From Rebecca billardiae RCC1528 (Eukaryota; Protista; Haptophyta): DNA of 64,000 nucleotides. The notes under the pieces were generated by a model. The model was not told where the DNA came from, did not search any database, and saw nothing but the letters and a program-made list of their open reading frames with translations. Position numbers and translations under genes: made by a program. Location: positions 248,001-312,000 of the forward strand of contig OZ251242.1 in assembly GCA_965240325.2 (NCBI GenBank), given 5' to 3'. Positions 13,427 to 31,751 of the stretch are shown piece by piece (the stretch's first letter is position 1; each line of letters starts with the position of its first letter).

Positions 13427-15382
13427 ATGACGACGCACGTGCTCGAGCTGCTGGAGGCGGCGCTGGCGGGGCTTCGCGGCGCGCAGGGCACGCCGCAGGC
13501 GCTCTCCGATTCGGACGAGGCGGCCCTGCTCGAGCGCGTGCGCGAGCTCCACGACCTCGCCCTCGCGCGCGCGGAGCGGCGGCGCCGCGTCGACGACCCG
13601 ACGGCCGCGGCGGCGCCGCCGCGGCTCGACGAGCTGCCGCGCGAGCTGTTGATGCGCGTGGTCGAGCTGATCGACGACCCGATGCACATTATCACACTCG
13701 CATGCACCTCCCGCCGGCTGCGCGCGCTCGACATCGAGCGCGTGCTCTGCGAGCGGCTCGTGCCACCGGGCGCGCGGGATGACGAGGACGGCGGCTGCGG
13801 CCTGAAGCCGGCCCGCGGGCTGGCGACTAAGGCGGCGGTCCGCTCGATCCCGGTGGCGCCGCCGCCGCCACCACTGCCCGCCATCCCGGTGAACGCCACG
13901 GAGCCGCCGGCGTGGCTGGGCGAGGGCGCGCCGTCGCGCCGCGTGGCGCTCGCCCTCGCGGTGGCGCGCGCGCGCTGCGTGTTCAGCCCGGCGCAGCAGC
14001 TGATCGCGGGGGACGAGTTCGTCTCGCTCGAGGTGGACGCGTCCGACGGCTCGCTCGCCGTCCGCGGGGGCAACGGCCTCAGCGGCCGCGACGTCCGCCA
14101 CGAGAATTCAGTCCGCAACGTGATGGGCCTTGGCCTCGAGAGCATTCTTGAAGGCGACGAGATGTACCGCAAGATTTTCATCGCGCGGCCGCGGCGCGTG
14201 TCGGCGCTGGCGACGGTGCGCGTGGTCGGCGTGGCGCTGGGCACCGAGCACGCCGGCGCGCTCGACGCGTGCGGCCGCGTGTACACGTGGGGCGACGGCG
14301 ACGGCGGGCAGCTCGGCCACGGCACGCTGGCGCAGCACGGCGCGCCGCGCGTCGTCGCGGGCTTGCTTGGCACGCCCGTCGTCGCTCTCGCGCTTGGCTA
14401 CCGGCACTCGCTCGCGCTGAGCGCCGGCGGCGCGCTGTACGCGTGGGGCAGCAACACCATCGGCGAGTGCGGCCTGGGCGAGCCCGTGGCCATCAAGTAC
14501 AACGGCGTCCACTACAACGGCCTGACGCTGCAGCCGACGCGCGTCGGCGGCGGCGCGCTCGCGGGCGCGCGCTGTGTGCGCGTGGCGACTGGCATGACAC
14601 ATAGCGTGGTCGTCGGCGCGGACGGCTGCGCGTATGCGTTCGGTTCGAATCGGGACGGCGCGCTCGGCCTCGGGGATCCCCTAAGGCCGGGCGGCCATCG
14701 CGCGCACACGCCCACGCGCGTCGCGCTCGACGCGCCGCCACCCGCCCTCGGCGGCGGCGGCGGCGGCGGCGGCGGCCCATCAGGCGCGGCCCCGCCCGCC
14801 GCCAAGCCGGGCGGCGCGCGCGCGCGCCCGGCGCGCGGGTCGAAGGGGAAGGAACCACCGCCGGCTGCTCGGGCGGAGCCGAGCGCGCCGCCGCCGCCCT
14901 CGCCGTCCGCGGTCGTCGAGGTCGCGTGCGGCCCGCGGCACACGATCCTGCTCGACCGGACGGGCCGCGTCTTCACGTGCGGCCACGGCGCGCTCGGCGT
15001 GCTCGGCCACGGCGACGCGCGCGACCGTCATGTGCCCACGCGCGTGGAGGGCGTGCTCGGCGACGCGGCGCAGGCGTGCGCGGGCCGCGCGTTCAGCGCG
15101 GTGCTCTGCGCGGACGGCAGCGCGTACACGTGGGGCTGCAACCAGTGGCAGTGCCTGGGGTACCCGCTCCGGCCCGGAGAAAACCCGGAGACGACGCTGC
15201 AAGACAGGCCGCGCGCGCTCGAGTCGAAGTTCACGCCGAACCGCGCGCAGTACAACGGCGGGCCGATCGCGGCGGTGGTGGGCTGCGGCTCGCGGATCCA
15301 CTTTGTGCAGCGCGCGGACGGCCGGGTGAAGACGCACGGCTTCGACGCGGGCGTGCGCCACGGCGACGACTACGAGGACGAG

Positions 15383-15417
<35 letters not shown>

Positions 15418-15430
15418 GAGTGACTACTGA
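13427..15430 (+). CDS. F-box plus RCC1-repeat protein with an acidic tail
   Basis: F-box-like LDELPRELLMRVVELI...LACTSRRLR. RCC1 repeats G.EH..ALD..GRVYTWGDGDGGQLGHG, YAWGSN..GECGLG, FTCGHG..GVLGHG. Confidence 0.88.
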
Positions 15431-18756: not shown

Positions 18757-19495
18757 AGGTCCAAGCGCTCGTCGGCGCTCGCCGCTTCGCGCGACAGGTC
18801 CGGCACCCGCACGTTCGGCGGTATCAGGAGCTGTCGGCGGTGCGCGCGCGCGCAGTGCGAGAGCGTGTGCCACTCGCGATCGAGGACTGTTTTCGTGTTT
18901 AGCTCCAAGGACAAACCGTCACCGTCAGGCACACACGGGCACGCCGCCGTCGCACGCCTGATCAGTTGGCAGTGCGTGCGCGCAGTCGAAGGCTCGGCAC
19001 GATGACGAGTAGCACAGTGGGTGCAGGAATACACGCGCAATCACACTGTCGCTGAGCTCGCACCAGAGTCATCTGTCGCGTTATTATTCGTCAGTGAGTC
19101 GGGTAGCTCACAATCATCTCGGTATGATGTCGCATTGTTATTCGTAGTCATCCTGCCCGTCAAACCGCTATAAATAAAAGGCGCGTGAACCCGCTGGGGA
19201 AATATTGCGACAGCACTGGCACGGCCCGCCGACCCCCCCGCCCGCCAGGGCTGAGTTTACTACTTTACTCAACTTTACCTACTATATAGGCTACTATTGT
19301 ACGTCTTACTATCTATAATAAAACGCATATCAACGACACGGCCGTAGCCTATCTATCATAGTAGGCGGCCCGCTGTTTTTTTTTAAATTCCCCTTTATAA
19401 CGGGCTCCGGGTGATCAGGCTGGCGGCCGAAGCCTCCAGCCCTACCCTGGCCAGCCCCCTGTGAAAAGCGAGACCCGCGATCTCGCCACGAAATT

Positions 19496-21220
19496 ATGGG
19501 GCCGCCGCCTCGGTCGGCCGTCGTCACGGCGTGCGTCGTGGCGCTGGTAGTGCTGGGCGCGTGCGCGAGCCTGTTGGCGACGTGGCGCTCCACCGCGCCC
19601 AGGCCGTCGATCCCGGGTGGCTCGCTGACCGTCGCATCGCCTGCAAGCCGCGCCGAGCCGCGCGCGGCGCCGAACGGTACGCACGCGGACTTGGAAGCGG
19701 TCGCCGCCATCCTGGACCTGCACTTGATCAGGATCACCGCAATCGACCAGCTGCTGGACCTAGAGGAGGCCTCCTTCTCGTTCGAGCAGCTGGACGGGCA
19801 AGTGCCCGCGCTCATGCGCTTCATCGAGACGAGCACCAAGCTGAAGAAGATCACGCTCGGGCCGCCCGGCAACGGCACCGAGTGCATGCTTGTGCTCGCG
19901 AACAGGCTCCGGGCCAACTTCCCGCTCAAGCAGCTCAGCCTGAAGTGCGCGCGCGGGACGGCACGCCGAGTCCGCGCGTGTGCGCGCGGTCGACCGCGGA
20001 GGGCTGGCGCTGGCTCGTGCCTGACTCAGGGGTGCTCTCCTCCCAACCGCACGCACCGACGCACTGCGCACGCGCCCTTGGCCTTGCGCCCACCCCGCTG
20101 GGGCACAGGGACGGCACGTTCGGCTCGATGGACGTCTACACCGACTTCATGGATGCGTTGAAGACCAACACGGTGCTCGAAGAGATCGAGCTGGAGTGCG
20201 CGCTCCGTGCGGCGCAGCGCGGCAGCACGCCGCTCTGCATGAGTTGCTTTGGTGGGAGGCTGGGAGCTTCTCCTGTGACCTGTCCCCTGGCCTGGTGGTG
20301 GGAGGAGCAAGAGCAGGAGGGGGCGGGGGTGCGATCACAGCCACGGGCGCGGCAGCTGCCTGGGTACGCCCACGGCGCCGCCCACCTTTCACGGCGCGCC
20401 GCTGCACACTGGTGGCGACGTTGCACCTACCAGGCGTTGCCCCGACTACGGCTTGCTGGTAGATGCGCTTGTGGCCAACACCGCGCTCAAGTCAGTCGAC
20501 GCCGGGTGTGCGCAAACTGCCCCGCCGCACGCCACCCGCACCCGTGCCCCTCACTCCATCCCTTCGCCCCCCGGCTCTCCGCTCTGGCAGCACCACGCCA
20601 AGCACAAATGACGCGGTGAGTGCGCTGGCGAAGCCGTTCGAGACCAACCGGGTGATCGAGCACTTCAGCATGAGGTACGCGCGCCGCGCGTGCTGCCGTG
20701 ATGATGTGCGAGGCATGGCGTGGTGCCGTCGGTTTACACGCGTCGCTGCGTCCGAACGGCCCCACGCGCCCCCAACCCCGCGCGTAACCGATGCCTCCTC
20801 ATTCCTTCGCATGTGCTGCCTGCTATCGAAGCCCCAGCTGATTTGGTTGGATTAATGACATCGCATACGATCCATGGATCGCTGCATTCAAGATCAACGA
20901 CGTGCTGCAGGCGGTCGACTTGGGGTACGCGCAGCAGAACGGACGAGGCCCTGCGCGACGCGCGCGTCCGCTGCGCGGTCAGCTCCAGACAAGGCTGGGG
21001 CGCACCGCACGTGCTCCTAGGCAGCGCGCCGCGCCGGCCATGCCCGCAGCCTGCTCACTGACCTGGCTTGGCTGCCCTCCGCGCTTCGCCCGCGTACGCG
21101 CTCAACGCCCGAACCGCCTCCGCATTCTTCCCCTTACTGCATCTGCCTCGTGCCACACCCACAGTCTCGAGTCCGAGAAGGGGGCTACTCTTCACTCGCC
21201 AGGTTTCTGCGCTAGCTTGA
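19496..21220 (+). pseudogene. LRR gene copy 1 (N-terminal TM/signal anchor plus RI-like LRRs), in-frame TGA at 20839-20841
   Basis: Introns 19945-20108, 20196-20433, 20506-20590, 20675-20837, 20925-21049 (all phase 2) and 21094-21164. LRR motifs ALKTNTVLEEIEL, ALVANTALKSVD, PFETNRVIEHFSM, AFKINDVLQAVDL. Confidence 0.7.
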
Positions 21221-21493
21221 ACCAAGCGTGGCACACGTTTCCTCGCCGTCAGCACGACATCACATGCGACCACTGGCGCCGCTGAATCAATCCCAGCGCT
21301 AAGTCCCACCCACTGCAGCCACCAGCACGCAGGCAGCATATGCCCTCGCCCCGTCGGCGGCCCGCCGTGGCCCAGGCCTGCGGCGGCGGCGAACCGTCCG
21401 CGCGACTACGCTCTGGCGACTGGCGGTGGACTGGCTCGGGGCATGCCGTCACCCGCGGCGCCACTCGTTCAGCAAATGTTGCGCTGATCTGCT

Positions 21494-21933
21494 TAGAGGG
21501 GTCAGAGCCCCACTGGGGGGTGCGTGGCCCAAAATCCAACTTCCTGCCGTCTTGAGATGAGGCTCTCAAACTTCGGGATGTCAATCATTATTGGCGCCTG
21601 AAATGACCTGGGGTCACGCTGACAAGTTTTGCGAAAAAATGTCGTCACATACTGGAGATATACGACCTCAATCTCGACGACGCGATCTCGGCAACATTAG
21701 TAGGGGAGATACACGATCTCCAAGGTGATCTCGCTATTTGCACCAGAATCGCACCGTCTAGATCACATTTTGGCAGTCTGAAATTGGCATAGGCGGATTC
21801 TACACCCTGGAATTAAGCCTAAACGAACTTAAACGGACTCAAACAGTTAGAAACCGAGGAGATATTTCATATTTCGATATTTCGGGAGATTGTGTCACTC
21901 GGGAGTGTAACGGTCGGAGCTCTGACCCCACTA
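21494..21933. mobile_element. 440-bp MITE, TIR tag[a/t]ggggtcagagc, 9-bp TSD tgatctgct
   Basis: TSD at 21485-21493 and 21934-21942. Empty site gcgctggtctgctgaggcgcg at about 29627. Confidence 0.9.
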
Positions 21934-22805
21934 TGATCTGCTGAGGCGCGCGCATCAGCATCAGCATATTATTATTGCTGATGACGCCGCGGACTCGAGG
22001 AGTCGATCGTCACGACAGCATGTAACGTCATCATGCTGACGACTGCTACAGGTCGATGAGGGCAGAATAGGAGACAGAGGGCACTGTCTTTGAGACAAAG
22101 GCGGCGGCCCCGAGTGGCACGGCACTGGCGGCCCACAGTGTCACTGAGTCACTGAGTGCTCGGGGGCACAGTGGGCGTGGTGCATGGCGCCCGCCTCGCA
22201 CGCGCTACAGCGCCCGGTGAGGTGGACGCAAGTCTGTCGAGGCGCGTCACATGTGTGCCCAAGGTGCATGCCTGGCACCTCCGCTCGTTTGCCGGCCGCT
22301 CCGCTGCCCATGCCTGGCCTGCATGCACCCGAAACGTAGCCGCCAAACGTGCCCCGCCACTGTGAGACGCCCGCGAACCGCGATGCACGGTGCCCTTCAG
22401 TGACGTGAGCAAGGTAGTCTACTACTGCAAGGGGGCGCCAACCTGACGGCTGGCCATGCCATGGGAGGTAGTAGGGACGTCAGACACGCGCCAAGAGCCC
22501 ATGGGAAGCTTGCTCTCCCCAGTTGATGAGCTCGTCGGGCGTGCGCACGCGGTTTGTCTCAAAGTCCCCCCCCCCCCCCCCCCCCCCAAAGTGAGACAAA
22601 CTTGATGGTGCTCGTGCTCCTCAACGGCATAGAGTTAGCCCACGAGACTCGCAGCTTGAACTCTTCGTCTGATGCCCTCCACGACGACGTGCGCGAAGGG
22701 CGTGAGCGCCATCGTGGTGGAGCAAGGGGGAGCGCAAAACACGATCCGGGATTTTGTTTAGGCGGCACGCTGTGAAAAGCGAGACCCGCGATCTCGCCAC
22801 GAATT

Positions 22806-24562
22806 ATGGGGCCGCCTCGGTCCGCCGTCGTCACGGCGTGCGGCGTCGTGGCGCTGGTAGTGCTGGGCGCGTGCGCGAGCCTGTTGGCGACGTGGCGCTC
22901 CATCGCGCCCAGGCCGTCGATCCCGGGTGGCTCGCTGACCGTCGCATCGCCTGCAAGCCGCGCCGAGCCGCGCGCGGCGCCGAACGATACGCACGCGGAC
23001 TTGGAAGCGGTCGCCGCCATCCTGGACCTGCACTTGATCAGGATCACCGCAATCGACCGGCTGCTGGACCTAGAGGAGGCCTCCTTCTCGTTCGAGCAGC
23101 TGGACGGGCAAGTGCCCGCGCTCATGCGCTTCATCGAGACGAGCACCAAGCTGAAGAAGATCACGCTCGGGCCGCCCGGCAACGGCACCGAGTGCATGCT
23201 TGTGCTCGCGAACAGGCTCCGGGCCAACTTCCCGCTCAAGCAGCTCAGCCTGAAGTGCGCGCGCGGGACGGCACGCCGAGTCCGCGCGTATGCGCGCGGT
23301 CGACCGCGGAGGGCTGGTGCTGGCTCGTGCCTGACTCAGGGGTGCTCTCCTCCCAACCGCATGCACTGCGCTCGCGCCCTTGCGCCCACCCCGCTGGGGC
23401 ACAGGGAGGGCACGTTCTGGGACGGCTACAACGTCTTAGCGTCGTACCCCGACTTAATGGATGCGCTGAAGACCAACACGGTGCTCGAAGCGATCGAGCT
23501 GGGGTGCGCGCTCCGTGCGGCGCAGGGCTGCGCAGCGCTGCGACACGCCGCGCTGCATGAGTTGCTTTGGTGGGCGGCTGGGATCTTCTCCTGTCCCCTG
23601 GCCTGGTGGGAGCAGGAGCAGGACGGGGGGGAAGTGCGATCACAGCCACGGGCGCGGCAGCTGCCTGGGCACGCCCACTGAGCCGCCCACCTTTCACGGC
23701 ACGCCGCTGCACATGGGTGGCGACGTTGGGCCTACCAGGGGTTGCCCCTTCGACCGCTTTGCTCGCGAATTCATGCCAGCCGTGGACTTGCTGGTAGATG
23801 CGCTTGTGGCCAACACCGCGCTCAAGTCAGTCGACACCGGGTGTGCGCAATCTGCCCCACCGCACGCCACCCGCACCCCTGCCCCTCACGCCATCCCTTC
23901 GCCCCTCTGCCCTCCTATCTGGCAGCATCATCCCAGGCTACGACAGTGACGCGGTGAGTGCGCTGGCGAAGCCGTTCGAGACCAACCGGGTGATCGAGCA
24001 CTTCAGCATGAGGTACGCGCGCCGCGCGTGCTGCCGTGACGTGCGAGGCATGGCGTGGTGCCGTCGGTTTAAACGCGTCGCTGCGTCCGAACGGCCCCAC
24101 GCGCCCCCGACCCAGCGCTTAACCCGATAACCGACCCCTCCTCACTCCTACGCGTGTGCGCCTGCTATCGAAGCCCCAGAGTGATGGGTTGGATTGATGA
24201 CACCGCATACGATCCATGGATCGCTGCATTCAAGATCAACGACGTGCTGCAGGCGGTCGACTTGGGGTACGCGCAGCAGAACGGACGAGGCCCTGCGCGA
24301 CGCGAGCGTCCGCTGCGCGGTCAGCTCCAGACAAGGCTGGGGCACACCGCACTCGCTCCTAGGCAGCGCGCCGCGCCGGCCATGCCCGCAGCCTGCTCAC
24401 TGACCCGGCTTGGCTGCCCTCCGCGCTTCGCCCGCGTACGCGCTCAACGCCCGAACCGCCTCCGCATTCTTCCCCTTACTGCATCTGCCTCGTGCCACAC
24501 CCACAGTCTCGAGTCCGAGAAGGGGGCTACTCTTCACTCGCCAGGTTTCTGCGCTAGCTTGA
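22806..24562 (+). CDS. LRR gene copy 2 (intact, chimeric), 7 exons
   Basis: Same intron positions as copy 1, and the spliced frame is open. Last-exon frame (RQVSALA*) is supported by synonymous differences against copy 3. Confidence 0.78.
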
Positions 24563-24835
24563 ACCAAGCGTGGCACACGTTTCCTCGCCGTCAGCACGAC
24601 ATCACATGCGACCACTGGCGCCGCTGAATCAATCCCAGCGCTAAGTCCCACCCACTGCAGCCACCAGCACGCAGGCAGCATATGCCCTCGCCCCGTCGGC
24701 GGCCCGCCGTGGCCCAGGCCTGCGGCGGCGGCGAACCGTCCGCGCGACTACGCTCTGGCGACTGGCGGTGGACTGGCTCGGGGCATGCCGTCACCCGCGG
24801 CGCCACTCGTTCAGCAAATGTTGCGCTGATCTGCT

Positions 24836-25275
24836 TAGAGGGGTCAGAGCCCCACTGGGGGGTGCGTGGCCCAAAATCCAACTTCCTGCCGTCTTGAGAT
24901 GAGGCTCTCAAACTTCGGGATGTCAATCATTATTGGCGCCTGAAATGACCTGGGGTCACGCTGACAAGTTTTGCGAAAAAATGTCGTCACATACTGGAGA
25001 TATACGACCTCAATCTCGACGACGCGATCTCGGCAACATTAGTAGGGGAGATACACGATCTCCAAGGTGATCTCGCTATTTGCACCAGAATCGCACCGTC
25101 TAGATCACATTTTGGCAGTCTGAAATTGGCATAGGCGGATTCTACACCCTGGAATTAAGCCTAAACGAACTTAAACGGACTCAAACAGTTAGAAACCGAG
25201 GAGATATTTCATATTTCGATATTTCGGGAGATTGTGTCACTCGGGAGTGTAACGGTCGGAGCTCTGACCCCACTA
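24836..25275. mobile_element. Duplicate of the 440-bp MITE carried in the tandem unit
   Basis: Same sequence and same TSD as 21494-21933. Confidence 0.9.
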
Positions 25276-26151
25276 TGATCTGCTGAGGCGCGCGCATCAG
25301 CATCAGCATATTATTATTGCTGATGACGCCGCGGACTCGAGGAGTCGATCGTCACGACAGCATGTAACGTCATCATGCTGACGACTGCTACAGGTCGATG
25401 AGGGCAGAATAGGAGACAGAGGGCACTGTCTTTGAGACAAAGGCGGCGGCCCCGAGTGGCACGGCACTGGCGGCCCACAGTGTCACTGAGTCACTGAGTG
25501 CTCGGGGGCACAGTGGGCGTGGTGCATGGCGCCCGCCTCGCACGCGCTACAGCGCCCGGTGAGGTGGACGCAAGTCTGTCGAGGCGCGTCACATGTGTGC
25601 CCAAGGTGCATGCCTGGCACCTCCGCTCGTTTGCCGGCCGCTCCGCTGCCCATGCCTGGCCTGCATGCACCCGAAACGTAGCCGCCAAACGTGCCCCGCC
25701 ACTGTGAGACGCCCGCGAACCGCGATGCACGGTGCCCTTCAGTGACGTGAGCAAGGTAGTCTACTACTGCAAGGGGGCGCCAGCCTGACGGCTGGCCATG
25801 CCATGGGAGGTAGTAGGGACGTCAGACACGCGCCAAGAGCCCATGGGAAGCTTGCTCTCCCCAGTTGATGAGCTCGTCGGGCGTGCGCACGCGGTTTGTC
25901 TCAAAGTCCCCCCCCCCCCCCCCCCCCCCCCCCAAAGTGAGACAAACTTGATGGTGCTCGTGCTCCTCAACGGCATAGAGTTAGCCCACGAGACTCGCAG
26001 CTTGAACTCTTCGTCTGATGCCCTCCACGACGACGTGCGCGAAGGGCGTGAGCGCCATCGTGGTGGAGCAAGGGGGAGCGCAAAACACGATCCGGGATTT
26101 TGTTTAGGCGGCACGCTGTGAAAAGCGAGACCCGCGATCTCGCCACGAATT

Positions 26152-27898
26152 ATGGGGCCGCCTCGGTCCGCCGTCGTCACGGCGTGCGGCGTCGTGGCGC
26201 TGGTAGTGCTGGGCGCGTGCGCGAGCCTGTTGGCGACGTGGCGCTCCATCGCGCCCAGGCCGTCGATCCCGGGTGGCTCGCTGACCGTCGCATCGCCTGC
26301 AAGCCGCGCCGAGCCGCGCGCGGCGCCGAACGATACGCACGCGGACTTGGAAGCGGTCGCCGCCATCCTGGACCTGCACTTGATCAGGATCACCGCAATC
26401 GACCAGCTGCTGGACCTAGAGGAGGCCTCCTTCTCGTTCGAGCAGCTGGACGGGCAAGTGCCCGCGCTCATGCGCTTCATCGAGACGAGCACCAAGCTGA
26501 AGAAGATCACGCTCGGGCCGCCCGGCAACGGCACCGAGTGCATGCTTGTGCTCGCGAACAGGCTCCGGGCCAACTTCCCGCTCAAGCAGCTCAGCCTGAA
26601 GTGCGCGCGCGGGACGGCACGCCGAGTCCGCGCGTATGCGCGCGGTCGACCGCGGAGGGCTGGTGCTGGCTCGTGCCTGACTCAGGGGTGCTCTCCTCCC
26701 AACCGCATGCACGGCGCTCGCGCCCTTGCGCCCACCCCGCTGGGGCACAGGGAGGGCACGTTCTGGGACGGCTACAACGTCTTAGCGTCGTACCCCGACT
26801 TAATGGATGCGCTGAAGACCAACACGGTGCTCGAAGCGATCGAGCTGGGGTGCGCGCTCCGTGCGGCGCAGGGCTGCGCAGCGCTGCGACACGCCGCGCT
26901 GCATGAGTTGCTTTGGTGGGCGGCTGGGATCTTCTCTCCTGTCCCCTGGCCTGGTGGGAGCAGGAGCAGGACGGGGGGGAAGTGCGATCACAGCCACGGG
27001 CGCGGCAGCTGCCTGGGCACGCCCACTGAGCCGCCCACCTTTCACGGCACGCCGCTGCACATGGGCGGCGACGTTGGGCCTACCAGGGGTTGCCCCTTCG
27101 ACCGCTTTGCTCGCGAATTCATGCCAGCCGTGGACTTGCTGGTAGATGCGCTTGTGGCCAACACCGCGCTCAAGTCAGTCGACACCGGGTGTGCGCAATC
27201 TGCCCCACCGCACGCCACCCGCACCCCTGCCCCTCACGCCATCCCTTCGCCCCTCTGCCCTCCTATCTGGCAGCATCATCCCAGGCTACGACAGTGACGC
27301 GGTGAGTGCGCTGGCGAAGCCGTTCGAGACCAACCGGGTGATCGAGCACTTCAGCATGAGGTACGCGCGCCGCGCGTGCTGCCGTGACGTGCGAGGCATG
27401 GCGTGGTGCCGTCGGTTTAAACGCGTCGCTGCGTCCGAACGGCCCCACGCGCCCCCGACCCAGCGCTTAACCCGATAACCGACCCCTCCTCACTCCTACG
27501 CGTGTGCGCCTGCTATCGAAGCCCCAGAGTGATGGGTTGGATTGATGACACCGCATACGATCCATGGATCGCTGCATTCAAGATCAACGACGTGCTGCAG
27601 GCGGTCGACTTGGGGTACGCGCAGCAGAACGGACGAGGCCCTGCGCGACGCGAGCGTCCGCTGCGCGGTCAGCTCCAGACAAGGCTGGGGCACACCGCAC
27701 TCGCTCCTAGGCAGCGCGCCGCGCCGGCCATGCCCGCAGCCTGCTCACTGACCCGGCTTGGCTGCCCTCCGCGCTTCGCCCGCGTACGCGCTCAACGCCC
27801 GAACCGCCTCCGCATTCCTCCCCTTTCTGCATCTGCCTCGTGCCACACCCACAGCCTCGAGGAGCAGCCTCACTCGCCAGATTTCTGCGCTCGCGTGA
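26152..27898 (+). CDS. LRR gene copy 3 (intact), 7 exons
   Basis: Near-identical to copy 2 up to about 27810, then divergent. Ends RQISALA*. Confidence 0.78.
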
Positions 27899-28111
27899 AC
27901 CAAGCGTGGAACACGTTTCCTCGCCGTCAGCACGACATCGCATGCAACCACTGGCGCCGCTGAATGAATCCCGGAGTCCCAGCGGCACGGCAGCCACAGG
28001 CAGGCAGCAGATGCCCTTGGCCGGGCCTGGGCCGCAGCGGCGGCGTCAGTCGACTCCGACGACGCTCTGGCCGCGGCAGACTGGCGTGGGACTAGCTGGA
28101 GAGCTGGGCAT

Positions 28112-29606
28112 GCCACCAACCGGTCCAGACCTCGGGATTTGCCAGCCCAAACCCAAAACTCTCCTCAGGCTTGCAAACCAAGCCCCCCAAAACCCCTCGC
28201 GCGGCGAAAGGCACCGTCCCTTAGGAGTCGATGCCTTCCGGGAGCTCTTTGAATACGCGTTGCGCGATGCGCGGGCACTCCCGGACAGCCGCCGCCAAGA
28301 AGGCCAGCTGCGCGCGCCCTCCTCGGTCGTCCGCCGCGGCGCGTGCGCGTCGAGGCGCATGACGGGCTTTGCCGTGCACGTCGTGCCCGTGCGCGCGGCT
28401 CATGCACGTCTCACGACCGAGATGCATGTCTTGCGCGCCCTCCTTTGGCTCGCACTGCGGTCTCCTCGTCGACAGCCTTGTGATCACGCGCGCCGCCATT
28501 TCAACCGGTTGCTGGCCTGCCAGCTGTCGAGCGTGCGTGTGCGGTCTGATCGATGTCGGCATGGCTGCCGGCGAAGCAGTGATGTTGAGTACACCCATAC
28601 CCATCTCGCAGAAGCGAAAAAGCTGACCTTTGAATGCCCCAGGGGCGCACGCGTGCCCATCACGCTCGTCGGACAGGCCTTCTCCAGAACTGCGCTTGCC
28701 ATCCGGCAGGTCTCTGCGCGCGGAGAGGGCGGCGAGGGCGTCGACGAGGCGGCACGATTGCTGCCTACGGGTCTTCTGGCTCCCACAAAGTGCCCGCGCA
28801 CGGCTGTCACGCCCGCATGCGGCCTTGGGAGCGCTGCGCAGGCGGGCCCTCGCGTCGCCCAGTGCTCGCCATCCCGTTTTGGGGGGCTTGGTTTGCAAGC
28901 CTCAGGAGAGTTTCCGGGTGGAAATCGGGGCGCCGCGCTCCCGGACTCAGCTGAACGCCGCCGCCGCCGCCACCTCGCTCGCGCCTACCGCCGCCAGGGC
29001 GAGGCCGCGCGACGTCCAGTAGAGCTTCCGATGGGACGCAGCGGGGCGGTAGCGAGGCTGCGAACTACTGTAGCATGCGTGTGGCGCAGCGCTTTGCGCC
29101 CTCGCACCTCGAAGGTCAGCTTGAGGCCCGCGCGAGCGCGAGCTTGCGCCGCCGCCACATTCTGCAAGTGACATGGGCGCCTTGCCTCCCGAGGCAGCAG
29201 AGAGGCACGCACGCGCGGGAAGCCGCTGGGCACCATGGCGCGCGTCTACGACCGTACTGTAACATGGCTCACGCCTTCCTGGGATGCGCGCCTCGGGTTG
29301 CTCTCAGCGCGCGCATACTTTGCGGGGATGACAGCACGGCTAAAGTGAGAGGCGGCGCACACGTCCGTGCGGGCTCAAGGCGCGGAGAAGATGGGCAGAC
29401 GCGAGTCGCCCGGTGCAGGGCGGCGCAGAAAGGCGCTATGCCTCTGCACGACGGCGTGCGCCATCGCCGCGTGCACGTCTACGACCACGGCGGCGCGGCA
29501 GCCGGCGGCGCCTCGCGGCGGATGGCTGTGGCGGCGCACGCGGCGCACGCGGCGGGTTTTGAATTTCCGAGTTTCCCAAATCCTGAGGTCTGGACCGGTT
29601 GGAGGC
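28112..29606. mobile_element. 1.5-kb non-autonomous TIR element flanked by AT
   Basis: TIR gcc[a/t]ccaaccggtccagacctc[g/a]ggatttg. AT at 28110-11 and 29607-08. Absent from the homologous flank of copies 1 and 2. Internal 36-bp IR pair at about 28157-28193 and 28877-28913. Confidence 0.85.
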
Positions 29607-29886: not shown

Positions 29887-31400
29887 ATGCGGTCCAACCT
29901 CGCGGCGCTCGGCGCGCTACTCCTGCTCGCGGCGCAAGCGCACGCGCTCGCCGGCTTCGGCTCGCGCGCCCGGCCGGCTGGCCGCGCCACCGCGCGCATG
30001 GCGGCACCCTCGCCCCTCGCCGCGCTCGCCAGCGCGTTTGGCAACGCCGTGAGTCAGCTCGGCGTGAGCGCGCCGGGCGCGGCGGCGCCCAGCCCGCCCG
30101 CCGTGCAGCGGCTGCTCGAGCTGGTCAAGGCGGGCGCGGAGCGCGAGGCGATCGAGGCGGCGATTGACGAGCTCCCCCCTTCCCCGCCCGCCGCCGCCAT
30201 CGACGGCCGCTGGCAGCTCGAGTGGACGTCGGAGAAGGAGGTGAACTTCCTTCGCGAAAAGGGCCTTTTTGGAACGCCGTGCGTCGGCGTGGTGCAGGAC
30301 GTGCGACTCGAGGCGGGCGCGCTGGAGAACCTGGTGCTCTTCGAGGACGGCTGCCTCCGCGTCGGCTCCACCGCCGCGCGCGCCGACTCCGACCCGAGCG
30401 GCCGCCGGGTCGACTTCAAGTTTGGCACGTGCGCCGTGCGGCGCGGCGGTCTTGAGCTCCCACTTCCGCCGGTGGGCGAGGGCTGGTTCGAGACGGTGTA
30501 CGTGGACGGGCGCGTGCGCGTCTCGCGCGACGTGCGCGGGGACTCGTCGGTCTCCACGTACCTCGGCCCCACCGAGCTCTTCTCCACCGACGACGCCGAC
30601 CTCGACGCCGAGCGCGCGGTCGCGCTGCTCAAGCGCGCGGCGGCGACGCGAGCGGTCGGCGGCGACGCGGTCGTCGGCGCCCTGCTGGCGCTGGAGCGGC
30701 GGATGCGGGAGGCGTCGAAGGCGGACGCGGGCGTGGCGAGCGCGCAGCTGCAGGCGCTGGATGGCGCGTGGCGCCTCGTCTTCACCACCGGCACCATCGA
30801 CACGCAGAAGGCGACCGGCCAGCGTGCGCGCACCGCGCGCACCGCGCGCACCGCGCGCACCGCGCGCCGCGCGCCGCCGCGCCACGCCGCGCGCCTCTGC
30901 GGTCGCGCCTCGCGAGCCGCGCCTCGCGACGGCTCACGCAGCCGCGGCCGGCGTTCGTCGCCCCCGCGCGCGCCGCAGGCATCAACTACTTCCCGGTCAA
31001 GGCGGTGCAGACCTTCGACACCGCGCCCAGCCCGATGGCCATCTCGAACGGCATCTTCCTCAGCGAGGCGGACGGCGCGAAACCGCTTGTGCGCTTCTTC
31101 GGCCCGTTCGAATGGCTCCCCTCCGCGGGCGGGATGCGCAGGCTCGAGTTCGACTTCGACCGGATCGAGCTGCTCGGCGGCGCGGCGAAGTTCGACCTCG
31201 GCCGCGGCAAGGCGGCCGAGCTCGGCGCCAAGTCGGGCCTCGGCAGCAAGAACAACGAGGAGCGGCTGCAGAAGGGTCAGAAGCCCTTCTTCGCGTGGGC
31301 GTACGCAGACGGCGAGATCGCGACCGCGCGAGGCGGCGGCGGCGGCATCGCGCTCTGGCGGCGGACCGTGTCGCCGGACGCGCCGGCTGGCGCGGACTGA
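29887..31400 (+). CDS. Plastid lipid-associated protein with two PAP-fibrillin domains; intron 30824-30978
   Basis: Signal peptide followed by AGF and a transit-like segment. IDGRWQLEWTSEKE, GWFETVYVDGRVRVSRDVRGD, LDGAWRLVFTT, YADGEIATARGGGGGIALW. Confidence 0.88.
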
Positions 31401-31751
31401 GCGCGGCGCGGCGCCGTCGCAGGTGCAGGCGGCACGTGGCACGTGTCGTCGTCGTCGATCATCGGCGCTATAACTTCGTTACACTGCGCGCGCTTAATTA
31501 CTTCGTCGTCAAGCTGGCGCCTGGCGGTGTCGTCGCGTGCCCGCATCATGCGCGCGCGTGACATACGACGACGACAGCAGTCATCACGACGACATCAGTC
31601 ATCACGGCGGCGCGCGGCGCAGTATCATAGCAGCAGGCGGTACTCGGCATCACGGCAGCAGCGGCGGCGCCGGGCCCAGCAGCCTATACGGCACGTCCAG
31701 CGCGCGGATCGGACGGGGATCGCCGCGCGCATCAACTCGCTCCGTTATTAC

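Follow-up and report, generated by a model that had tools for sequence, protein, structure and literature searches.

Plant polygalacturonase-inhibiting proteins (PGIPs) are small, consist of leucine-rich repeats (LRRs) only, carry a secretory signal at their N-terminus and lack signalling domains. Their genes form short tandem arrays, the members of which vary at positions that contact the ligand, and a ligand is known for these proteins. The PGIP family appears in PMC10278945. The ROCO genes of the brown alga Ectocarpus include 222 exons of 72 nt (24 aa), which are near-identical and have demonstrably been shuffled (Zambounis et al., 2012, PMC3341825). For exon 5 of human NLRP3, an exon of the ribonuclease inhibitor (RI) type, the dropping of a module by splicing has been demonstrated (Hoss et al., 2019, PMC6642158). 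We analyze here a tandem array of three copies of a small gene with RI-like LRRs, located in a 64,000-nucleotide stretch of the genome of the haptophyte Rebecca billardiae RCC1528 (contig OZ251242.1, positions 248,001 to 312,000; hereafter the window). This host belongs to a group of algae in which recognition and defence molecules are essentially unknown. We regard it as reasonably probable that the locus is a lineage-specific array of an LRR-only gene encoding a putative binding protein, and that the loops of its two versions, A and B, have been remodelled under constraint on the repeat cores.

Gene structure and predicted protein of the array

The array extends from 19462 to 28080 of the window and consists of one unit repeated three times head to tail, at a period of 3310-3348 nt. 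A splice model was built from conserved GT...AG pairs and checked in all three copies. It gives six exons per gene where the preliminary description of this locus had counted four, and it places the end of the third copy at 27963 instead of 27898. The copies and the leader that precedes each of them are:

19496-21285, plus strand: copy c1 (version A); exons 19496-19944, 20109-20195, 20434-20505, 20591-20674, 20838-20924 and 21165-21285; coding sequence of 900 nt if read through an in-frame TGA
22806-24627, plus strand: copy c2 (chimera); exons 22806-23254, 23405-23503, 23739-23840, 23926-24012, 24180-24266 and 24507-24627; coding sequence of 945 nt, open throughout
26152-27963, plus strand: copy c3 (version B); exons 26152-26600, 26751-26849, 27087-27188, 27274-27360, 27528-27614 and 27855-27963; coding sequence of 933 nt, open throughout
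22772-22805, plus strand (also 19462-19495 and 26118-26151): 34-nt leader before the ATG, conserved in all three copies

All 15 introns of the model are of the GT-AG type and lie in phase 2, with GTGCGC, GTGTGC or GTACGC as donors. Their position is constant in each repeat, directly after the LxxLxL strand plus two nucleotides of a split codon. The lengths of exons 2 to 5 are multiples of three (87/99, 72/102, 84/87 and 87 nt), so that each of these exons can be dropped in frame; the phase-2 introns and frame-neutral exons that had been described earlier are hence confirmed. In the predicted frame, GC content is 0.85 at third codon positions and about 0.46-0.47 at second positions, a contrast that constitutes a strong coding signature for a GC-rich genome; intron GC is 0.72. 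Homology between versions A and B begins 34 nt 5′ of the ATG and stops about 100 nt past the stop codon.

The predicted protein, of about 300-314 codons, comprises a leader, LRR units and a short tail, with no other domain. Two repeats are encoded in exon 1 and one degenerate repeat in each of exons 2 to 5, exon 6 being a C-terminal tail of 35-39 residues with two cysteines. No signalling domain (ROC-COR, kinase or NB-ARC) was found in the coding sequence of about 300 codons, and Pfam searches with exon 1 and with each single exon gave no domain. The product of exon 1 is laid out as follows:

22806-23252 (c2), plus strand: exon 1 product, 149 aa; hydrophobic segment at aa 8-27, Ser/Thr/Ala/Pro/Arg-rich stretch at aa 30-61, a helical cap, and two RI-like LRR units at aa 89-149

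The hydrophobic segment is preceded by an Arg and reaches a Kyte-Doolittle value of 2.5-2.7 over 19 aa. About 80% of the approximately 32 residues that follow are S, T, A, P, G or R, and with 4 basic and 1-2 acidic residues this stretch has a net positive charge. The composition of the leader is compatible with a signal anchor and stalk, with a signal peptide that is cleaved off, or with a bipartite plastid-targeting leader, that is, a signal peptide plus a transit-peptide-like stretch as in red-lineage complex plastids, which would bring the LRR protein to the plastid or periplastid space. We consider this last address rather unlikely. The succession of the hydrophobic segment and a stretch of such composition is in its favour, as is the neighbouring fibrillin gene (see below), which fits an alga with plastids of this kind; but, by eye, no obvious signal-peptide cleavage site with an aromatic residue or Leu at +1 was seen, and the Pro/Ser-rich stalk of a surface protein would look alike.

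When the units of exons 2 to 5 and the two units of exon 1 were aligned, a core xxLxxALxTNxxLxxhxL recurred in which the Asn is nearly invariant. Helix, Asn and LxxLxL strand are present in all units. Their length, 24-34 aa, varies around the 28-29 aa of the RI-type repeat LxxLxLxx(N/C)xLxxxGxxxLxxxLxxNxx, and conservation of its xx(N/C)xL loop is lacking in exons 2 to 5. Exon 1 was compared exhaustively by phmmer with 1.84 billion representative proteins, and only three weak matches resulted, all to unrelated long repeat proteins. One of them, P0002 (E = 2.2e-7), has a Death domain and a long array of LRR_6 repeats; BLASTP placed aa 89-149 of exon 1 in register with two consecutive 28-residue RI-type repeats of this protein. 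The correct register was also obtained, weakly (probability 19%), when a profile of the exon units was compared with the LRR_6 protein by hhalign. Look-alikes in the ESM Atlas score 0.88-0.91 and their nearest named clusters are LRR_6/TMOD-LRR, which are to be taken as leads only.

Upon searching the genome with the exon-unit profile, canonical one-LRR exons (GNxLTDVSALAEALRTNTSLQxLDL) were found elsewhere which have the same end point (LxxLxL plus two nucleotides of the split codon), the same phase and the same GTACGCGC donor as the exons of the array. The locus L022 has the following structure:

G000:C37:226500-230500 (L022): large first exon, then near-identical one-LRR exons about 424 nt apart; exon ends at L022 positions 1212, 1638, 2060 and 2488, each with LxxLxL plus 2 nt before GTACGCGC

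In this genome, RI-like LRR genes generally have one exon per repeat and phase-2 introns, a layout that the array gene inherited and did not invent. According to weak matches of the profile, contig C15 may have genes of this kind at about 984-1037 kb and 1341-1346 kb. A kinase gene (L007) that figured among the weak matches of exon 1 in the genome was regarded as a chance match.

We accept the RI-like LRR assignment on account of the in-register match to P0002, the recurring core and the canonical exons with the same borders. A different class was considered, as the best PDB scores of the 28-position exon-unit profile were those against designed alphaRep proteins, which would make the units alpha-helical repeats (HEAT/alphaRep-like) and not LRRs. 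We hold this to be very improbable: the alphaRep matches, judged spurious, cover only a 12-residue helix motif and are summed over many repeats, and tropomodulin and LRRC34 are also among the PDB matches of the profile (at E of about 0.3 only). Moreover, LRRs are indicated by the N-x-x-L-x-x-L-x-L half of the unit, by the alignment of exon 1 in register with LRR_6 repeats and by the canonical LRR exons of this genome, whose borders are identical. Sequence search of the PDB with exon 1 gave chance-level matches only. In favour of the preliminary description, the array is a real family of small RI-like LRR genes in tandem, with one repeat per exon and a hydrophobic segment at the N-terminus.

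Divergence of versions A and B at the exon starts

Column-by-column comparison of the three copies established that c2 is a very recent unequal-crossover chimera, made of version B from its 5′ end to intron 5 and of version A thereafter. It equals c3 up to position 24406 (193 variable columns, with 5 private exceptions) and equals c1 from 24470 on (83 variable columns), including the whole 1.5-kb spacer. The breakpoint is confined to one interval:

24407-24469, plus strand: crossover breakpoint, an interval of 63 nt within c2 intron 5

As c2 is chimeric, the array contains only two independent versions, A (c1) and B (c3). Their divergence by region is:

Exon 1: 0.7%
Intron 1: 5.3%, its 5′ part nearly identical
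Intron 2: 9.3%
Intron 3: 10.6%
Intron 4: 6.3%
Intron 5: 2.9%
Exon 6: 11%, plus a 12-nt indel

For exons 2 to 5, the final 48 nt, which cover the end of the helix and the strand, were pooled as the cores, and the remaining 5′ parts as the exon starts. In the pooled introns, 48 of 621 positions are substituted (7.7%). The cores lie below this rate, with 5 substitutions in 192 positions (2.6%; Fisher p = 0.011 versus introns), and the exon starts lie far above it, with 35 in 138 (25.4%; Fisher p = 7e-8 versus introns) and a further 45 gap columns. Divergence is therefore not spread evenly over introns and cores, and the near-identity of exon 1 and of the helix and strand cores that had been noticed at first reading holds at 0.7% and 2.6%, respectively. 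Indels follow the same division. Those in exons measure 3, 3, 12, 30, 3 and 12 nt, all multiples of three, which means that both lineages stayed in frame after separating, and those in introns (14, 10, 5, 6, 3, 8 and 1 nt) are not frame-limited. The in-frame indels and the conservation of the cores show that coding constraint acted on both versions.

The variable segments at the exon starts are:

23406-23456 (c2), plus strand: exon 2 loop, 17 aa in c2 and c3 versus 13 aa in c1 (20110-20148)
23740-23787 (c2), plus strand: exon 3 loop, 16 aa in c2 and c3 versus 6 aa in c1 (20435-20452)
23927-23947 (c2), plus strand: exon 4 loop, 7 aa in c2 and c3 versus 6 aa in c1 (20592-20609)
27856-27882 (c3), plus strand: variable start of exon 6, 9 aa in c3 versus 13 aa in c1 (21166-21204) and c2, with a 12-nt in-frame indel

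The loop pairs of exons 2, 3 and 4 are DGTFGSMDVYTDF versus EGTFWDGYNVLASYPDL (+4 aa), RCPDYG versus GCPFDRFAREFMPAVD (+10 aa) and TTPSTN versus IIPGYDS (+1 aa); peptides and length differences agree exactly with those quoted in the preliminary description. The versions also differ in the first codons of exon 5 and over the first 9-13 residues of exon 6, so that all five downstream exons vary at their 5′ end. The remainder of exon 6, that is, the Cys-containing tail, has further replacements between the versions.

When aligned with canonical RI-type units, the exon starts fall on the xxNxLxDxG segment, the loop between the beta-strand and the helix that follows it; the variable positions do follow the LxxLxL strand, as had been proposed. 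In the array gene, the canonical Asn and Leu of this loop are gone, and loop length ranges from 6 to 17 residues. Since the same repeat position is hit in every unit, in an LRR solenoid the loops would line one flank beside the concave face, a placement that follows from established LRR architecture. This suggests that the differences between A and B may mark diverging binding surfaces. We propose that, after the two versions separated, purifying selection preserved helix and strand in each repeat, and that the strand-to-helix loop at every exon start would have been rebuilt by in-frame indels and dense amino-acid replacements. The loops could then form one edge of the solenoid as a binding surface that differs between A and B, and the product would be a secreted or membrane-tethered binding protein, of receptor-like or inhibitor type. 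A role in sensing viruses, bacteria or mates is pure conjecture.

The ratio of nonsynonymous to synonymous differences per site (pN/pS) is 0.6 in the cores, 1.9 in the exon starts and 3.0 in exon 6 (12 nonsynonymous versus 1 synonymous difference), none of these values being significantly above 1. They come from two sequences only, with 4.2 synonymous differences in the exon starts and 1.0 in exon 6, and from alignments that are partly ambiguous. The earlier reading of the family as one of diversifying receptors is plausible, but it comes from one pairwise comparison, in which the pN/pS of 1.9 in the loops is not significant; the substitution rate of the loops does exceed that of the introns.

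In copy c1, one codon interrupts the predicted reading frame:

20839-20841, plus strand: in-frame TGA, first full codon of exon 5, in c1 only

If exon 5 is retained, the product of c1 ends after exon 4 at most, or c1 is a pseudogene. Skipping of exon 5 in c1 would keep exons 4 and 6 in frame. An alternative acceptor 6 nt upstream of c1 exon 5 is in the same frame and does not rescue the TGA; more generally, all alternative acceptors considered for removing the long loops of version B or for rescuing the c1 stop break the frame or keep the stop. Reading of the TGA as selenocysteine is unlikely.

Several observations weigh against the remodelling of the loops under core constraint. One of the two versions (c1) carries this premature stop. 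In each of the three copies a transposon lies within 50 nt 5′ of the ATG, abutting the leader. No orthologues were found in public proteins (by the exhaustive phmmer search with exon 1) or in a metagenome scan. The pN/pS above 1 rests on few synonymous changes in one pairwise comparison. The loops are devoid of the structural Asn and Leu of canonical RI repeats, so that regular LRR packing is not assured there. All these points also speak for relaxed constraint, in which case the loops would simply tolerate change, the array would be a young, decaying orphan family in a transposon-rich region, and the differences between A and B would have no function. To them have to be added that exon 1 and each single exon had no match to an LRR family in Pfam even at E ≤ 10, the exons being shorter than the Pfam LRR model and out of phase with it, and that the AlphaFold2 single-sequence model of exon 1 alone was unusable (predicted local distance difference test, pLDDT, of 44). 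Divergence is also elevated in the last 40 nt of the introns (12.7%), and this rise near the acceptors hints at a local mutational or recombinational component. Finally, the cores have diverged less at synonymous sites (1 change in 42) than the introns have overall, so that micro-conversion or codon bias may contribute to core conservation in addition to selection at the protein level.

Relaxed constraint is in our view rather unlikely, since neutrality alone should leave the loops within the intron rate of 7.7%, whereas they have diverged by 25%, three times as much (p = 7e-8). Furthermore, six of six exon indels are in frame, which those of the introns are not, and the cores are conserved below the intron rate. 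The low synonymous divergence of the cores also bears on a purely recombinational origin of the pattern, in which patchy gene conversion would have homogenised exon 1, the cores and the 3′ end and left old divergence elsewhere, with no signal of selection. Exchange between copies is demonstrable at this locus, as exon 1 and the first part of intron 1 are near-identical and c2 is a clean chimera. Such a mosaic would nevertheless need four tracts of about 50 nt, each starting just after the loop and ending exactly at the donor, and it leaves unexplained both the excess of loop divergence over introns and the all-in-frame exon indels; we judge it improbable.

As exons 2 to 5 are frame-neutral, exon skipping is possible in principle, although the sequence gives no sign that it takes place. 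A more elaborate proposal builds on this: the product would be a small surface or secreted binding protein of a new kind in the alga, whose specificity comes from loops of variable length replacing the canonical Asn-ladder loop of RI-type repeats, and exon skipping would yield shorter isoforms, for instance by bypassing the stop in c1 exon 5, thereby providing splice-tunable recognition of viruses or bacteria or in mating. We attach little credence to this extended version.

History and surroundings of the array

The near-identity of exon 1 is to be seen in the light of the central introns, which have diverged by 5-11% between A and B and thereby indicate that the 5′ end was homogenised and not conserved by selection alone. 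Gene conversion explains the 5′ identity better than selection does, because the start of intron 1 is conserved along with exon 1; the near-identity of exon 1 hence probably stems from gene conversion. The history of the array may be reconstructed in three steps. An old duplication would have given rise to version A (c1) and version B (c3), whose introns differ today by about 8%. Later, homogenisation, probably by gene conversion, would have affected the 5′ end, from the leader through exon 1 to the beginning of intron 1. Very recently, unequal crossover in intron 5 generated the chimera c2 and doubled the transposon-filled spacer. Version A may at present be truncated by its stop codon, or be on its way out. 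As a pair of old duplicates whose 5′ ends were homogenised and to which a recent crossover, its breakpoint mapped to 63 nt, added a chimera, the locus offers a clean textbook case of the growth of a tandem array.

Exon shuffling, in contrast to what the preliminary description had envisaged, was not borne out. The introns of a gene have no mutual similarity (z ≤ 1), so there is no sign of shuffling, and the repeat exons, which are old, share only weak similarity at the level of the motif. Recent duplication of an exon cassette within the gene was considered for two blocks of similar size (intron 1, exon 2 and intron 2, about 489 nt; intron 4, exon 5 and intron 5, about 490 nt) and discarded, the introns being dissimilar. 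A genome-wide search found no further gene copies or variable exon pieces beyond the three copies of the array; no other donors for the loop sequences are therefore present in this genome.

Dispersed repeats abut both ends of the array homology and fill the spacer. The elements concerned are:

21286-22771, duplicated at 24628-26117, no strand: spacer between copies; otherwise identical copies
About 21493-21933, again at about 24835-25275: spacer repeat 1, at least 6 genome copies, 93-95% identity
About 22038-22757, again at about 25380-26103: spacer repeat 2, at least 30 genome copies, 85-95% identity
18756-19270 and 19385-19459: dispersed repeats upstream of c1, dozens of copies, 88-98% identity, reaching to about 35 nt from the ATG
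28163-28906: element of about 740 nt directly after c3, resembling a miniature inverted-repeat transposable element (MITE), with inverted ends of about 30 nt; dozens of copies, 96-99% identity

Spacer repeat 2 stops 15 nt before the 34-nt leader, which puts a transposon at the expected promoter site of c2 and c3. Versions A and B have different transposons at nearly the same upstream spot. The element at 28163-28906 looks like a young MITE-like transposon.

Very few changes have accumulated since the crossover. Among them is a length difference in a poly-C tract of the spacer repeat (22565-22585 versus 25912-25935). Another, one of about five private changes of c2, is at position 23059 (exon 1, codon 85), where c2 has CGG (Arg) and both c1 and c3 have CAG (Gln).

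Two genes flank the array and its repeats:

13427-15430, plus strand: RCC1-repeat protein gene, a long single open reading frame
29887-31473, plus strand: PAP/fibrillin plastid-lipid-associated protein gene, whose nearest Atlas clusters are from diatoms

A fibrillin neighbour with diatom-like clusters fits a photosynthetic protist with a red-lineage plastid.

Comparison with known systems

The array gene resembles vertebrate NLR and ribonuclease inhibitor genes (PMC6642158) in its RI-class repeats, in the fixed exon border at the beta-strand and in its frame-neutral exons. NLR exons measure 171 nt and hold two repeats (PMC6642158), whereas those of the array gene measure 72-102 nt and hold one. 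Unlike an NLR, the array gene has no NACHT or other signalling domain, and it has an N-terminal hydrophobic leader.

With the ROCO and LRR-kinase genes of brown algae (PMC3341825; PMC11378527) it has in common that the host is an alga, that each small symmetric exon encodes one LRR and that paralogues are clustered. In both cases variation is concentrated at solvent-exposed repeat positions, and both have been proposed as candidate recognition receptors. The LRRs of Ectocarpus are attached to ROC-COR or kinase domains, whereas the array gene has no effector domain. Ectocarpus has hundreds of near-identical shuffled exons, in contrast to the four old, dissimilar repeat exons and unrelated introns found here. 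The mode of variation differs as well, being loop length in the array gene and point substitutions on the concave face in Ectocarpus.

Within the same genome, the genes of the L022 type share with the array gene the exon border (LxxLxL plus 2 nt, followed by GTACGCGC or GTGCGCGC), phase 2 and the core ALxxALxTNTxLxxLxL. They consist of near-identical, amplified exon-plus-intron units with the canonical xGNxLTDxS loop and have large N-terminal domains; the array gene, in contrast, is a small gene with old repeats, in which the canonical loop has given way to idiosyncratic loops of 6-17 residues. With PGIPs, the predicted product of the array has in common its small size, its LRR-only composition, the lack of a signalling domain and its encoding in a short tandem array. 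No sequence relationship of the array gene to PGIPs was found. The latter have 24-aa LRRs of the plant-specific extracellular type with Cys-rich caps, as opposed to the RI-like 28-aa repeats of the array gene.

Taken together, the design of the gene is one already known from brown algae and vertebrate NLRs. What appears to be particular, and is suggestive on sequence grounds, is the existence of two paralogue versions in which the loop at every exon start has been remodelled with preservation of the frame. If these loops are a real binding surface, the array would represent a compact natural case in which LRR specificity is changed by remodelling loop length and not by substitutions on the concave face.

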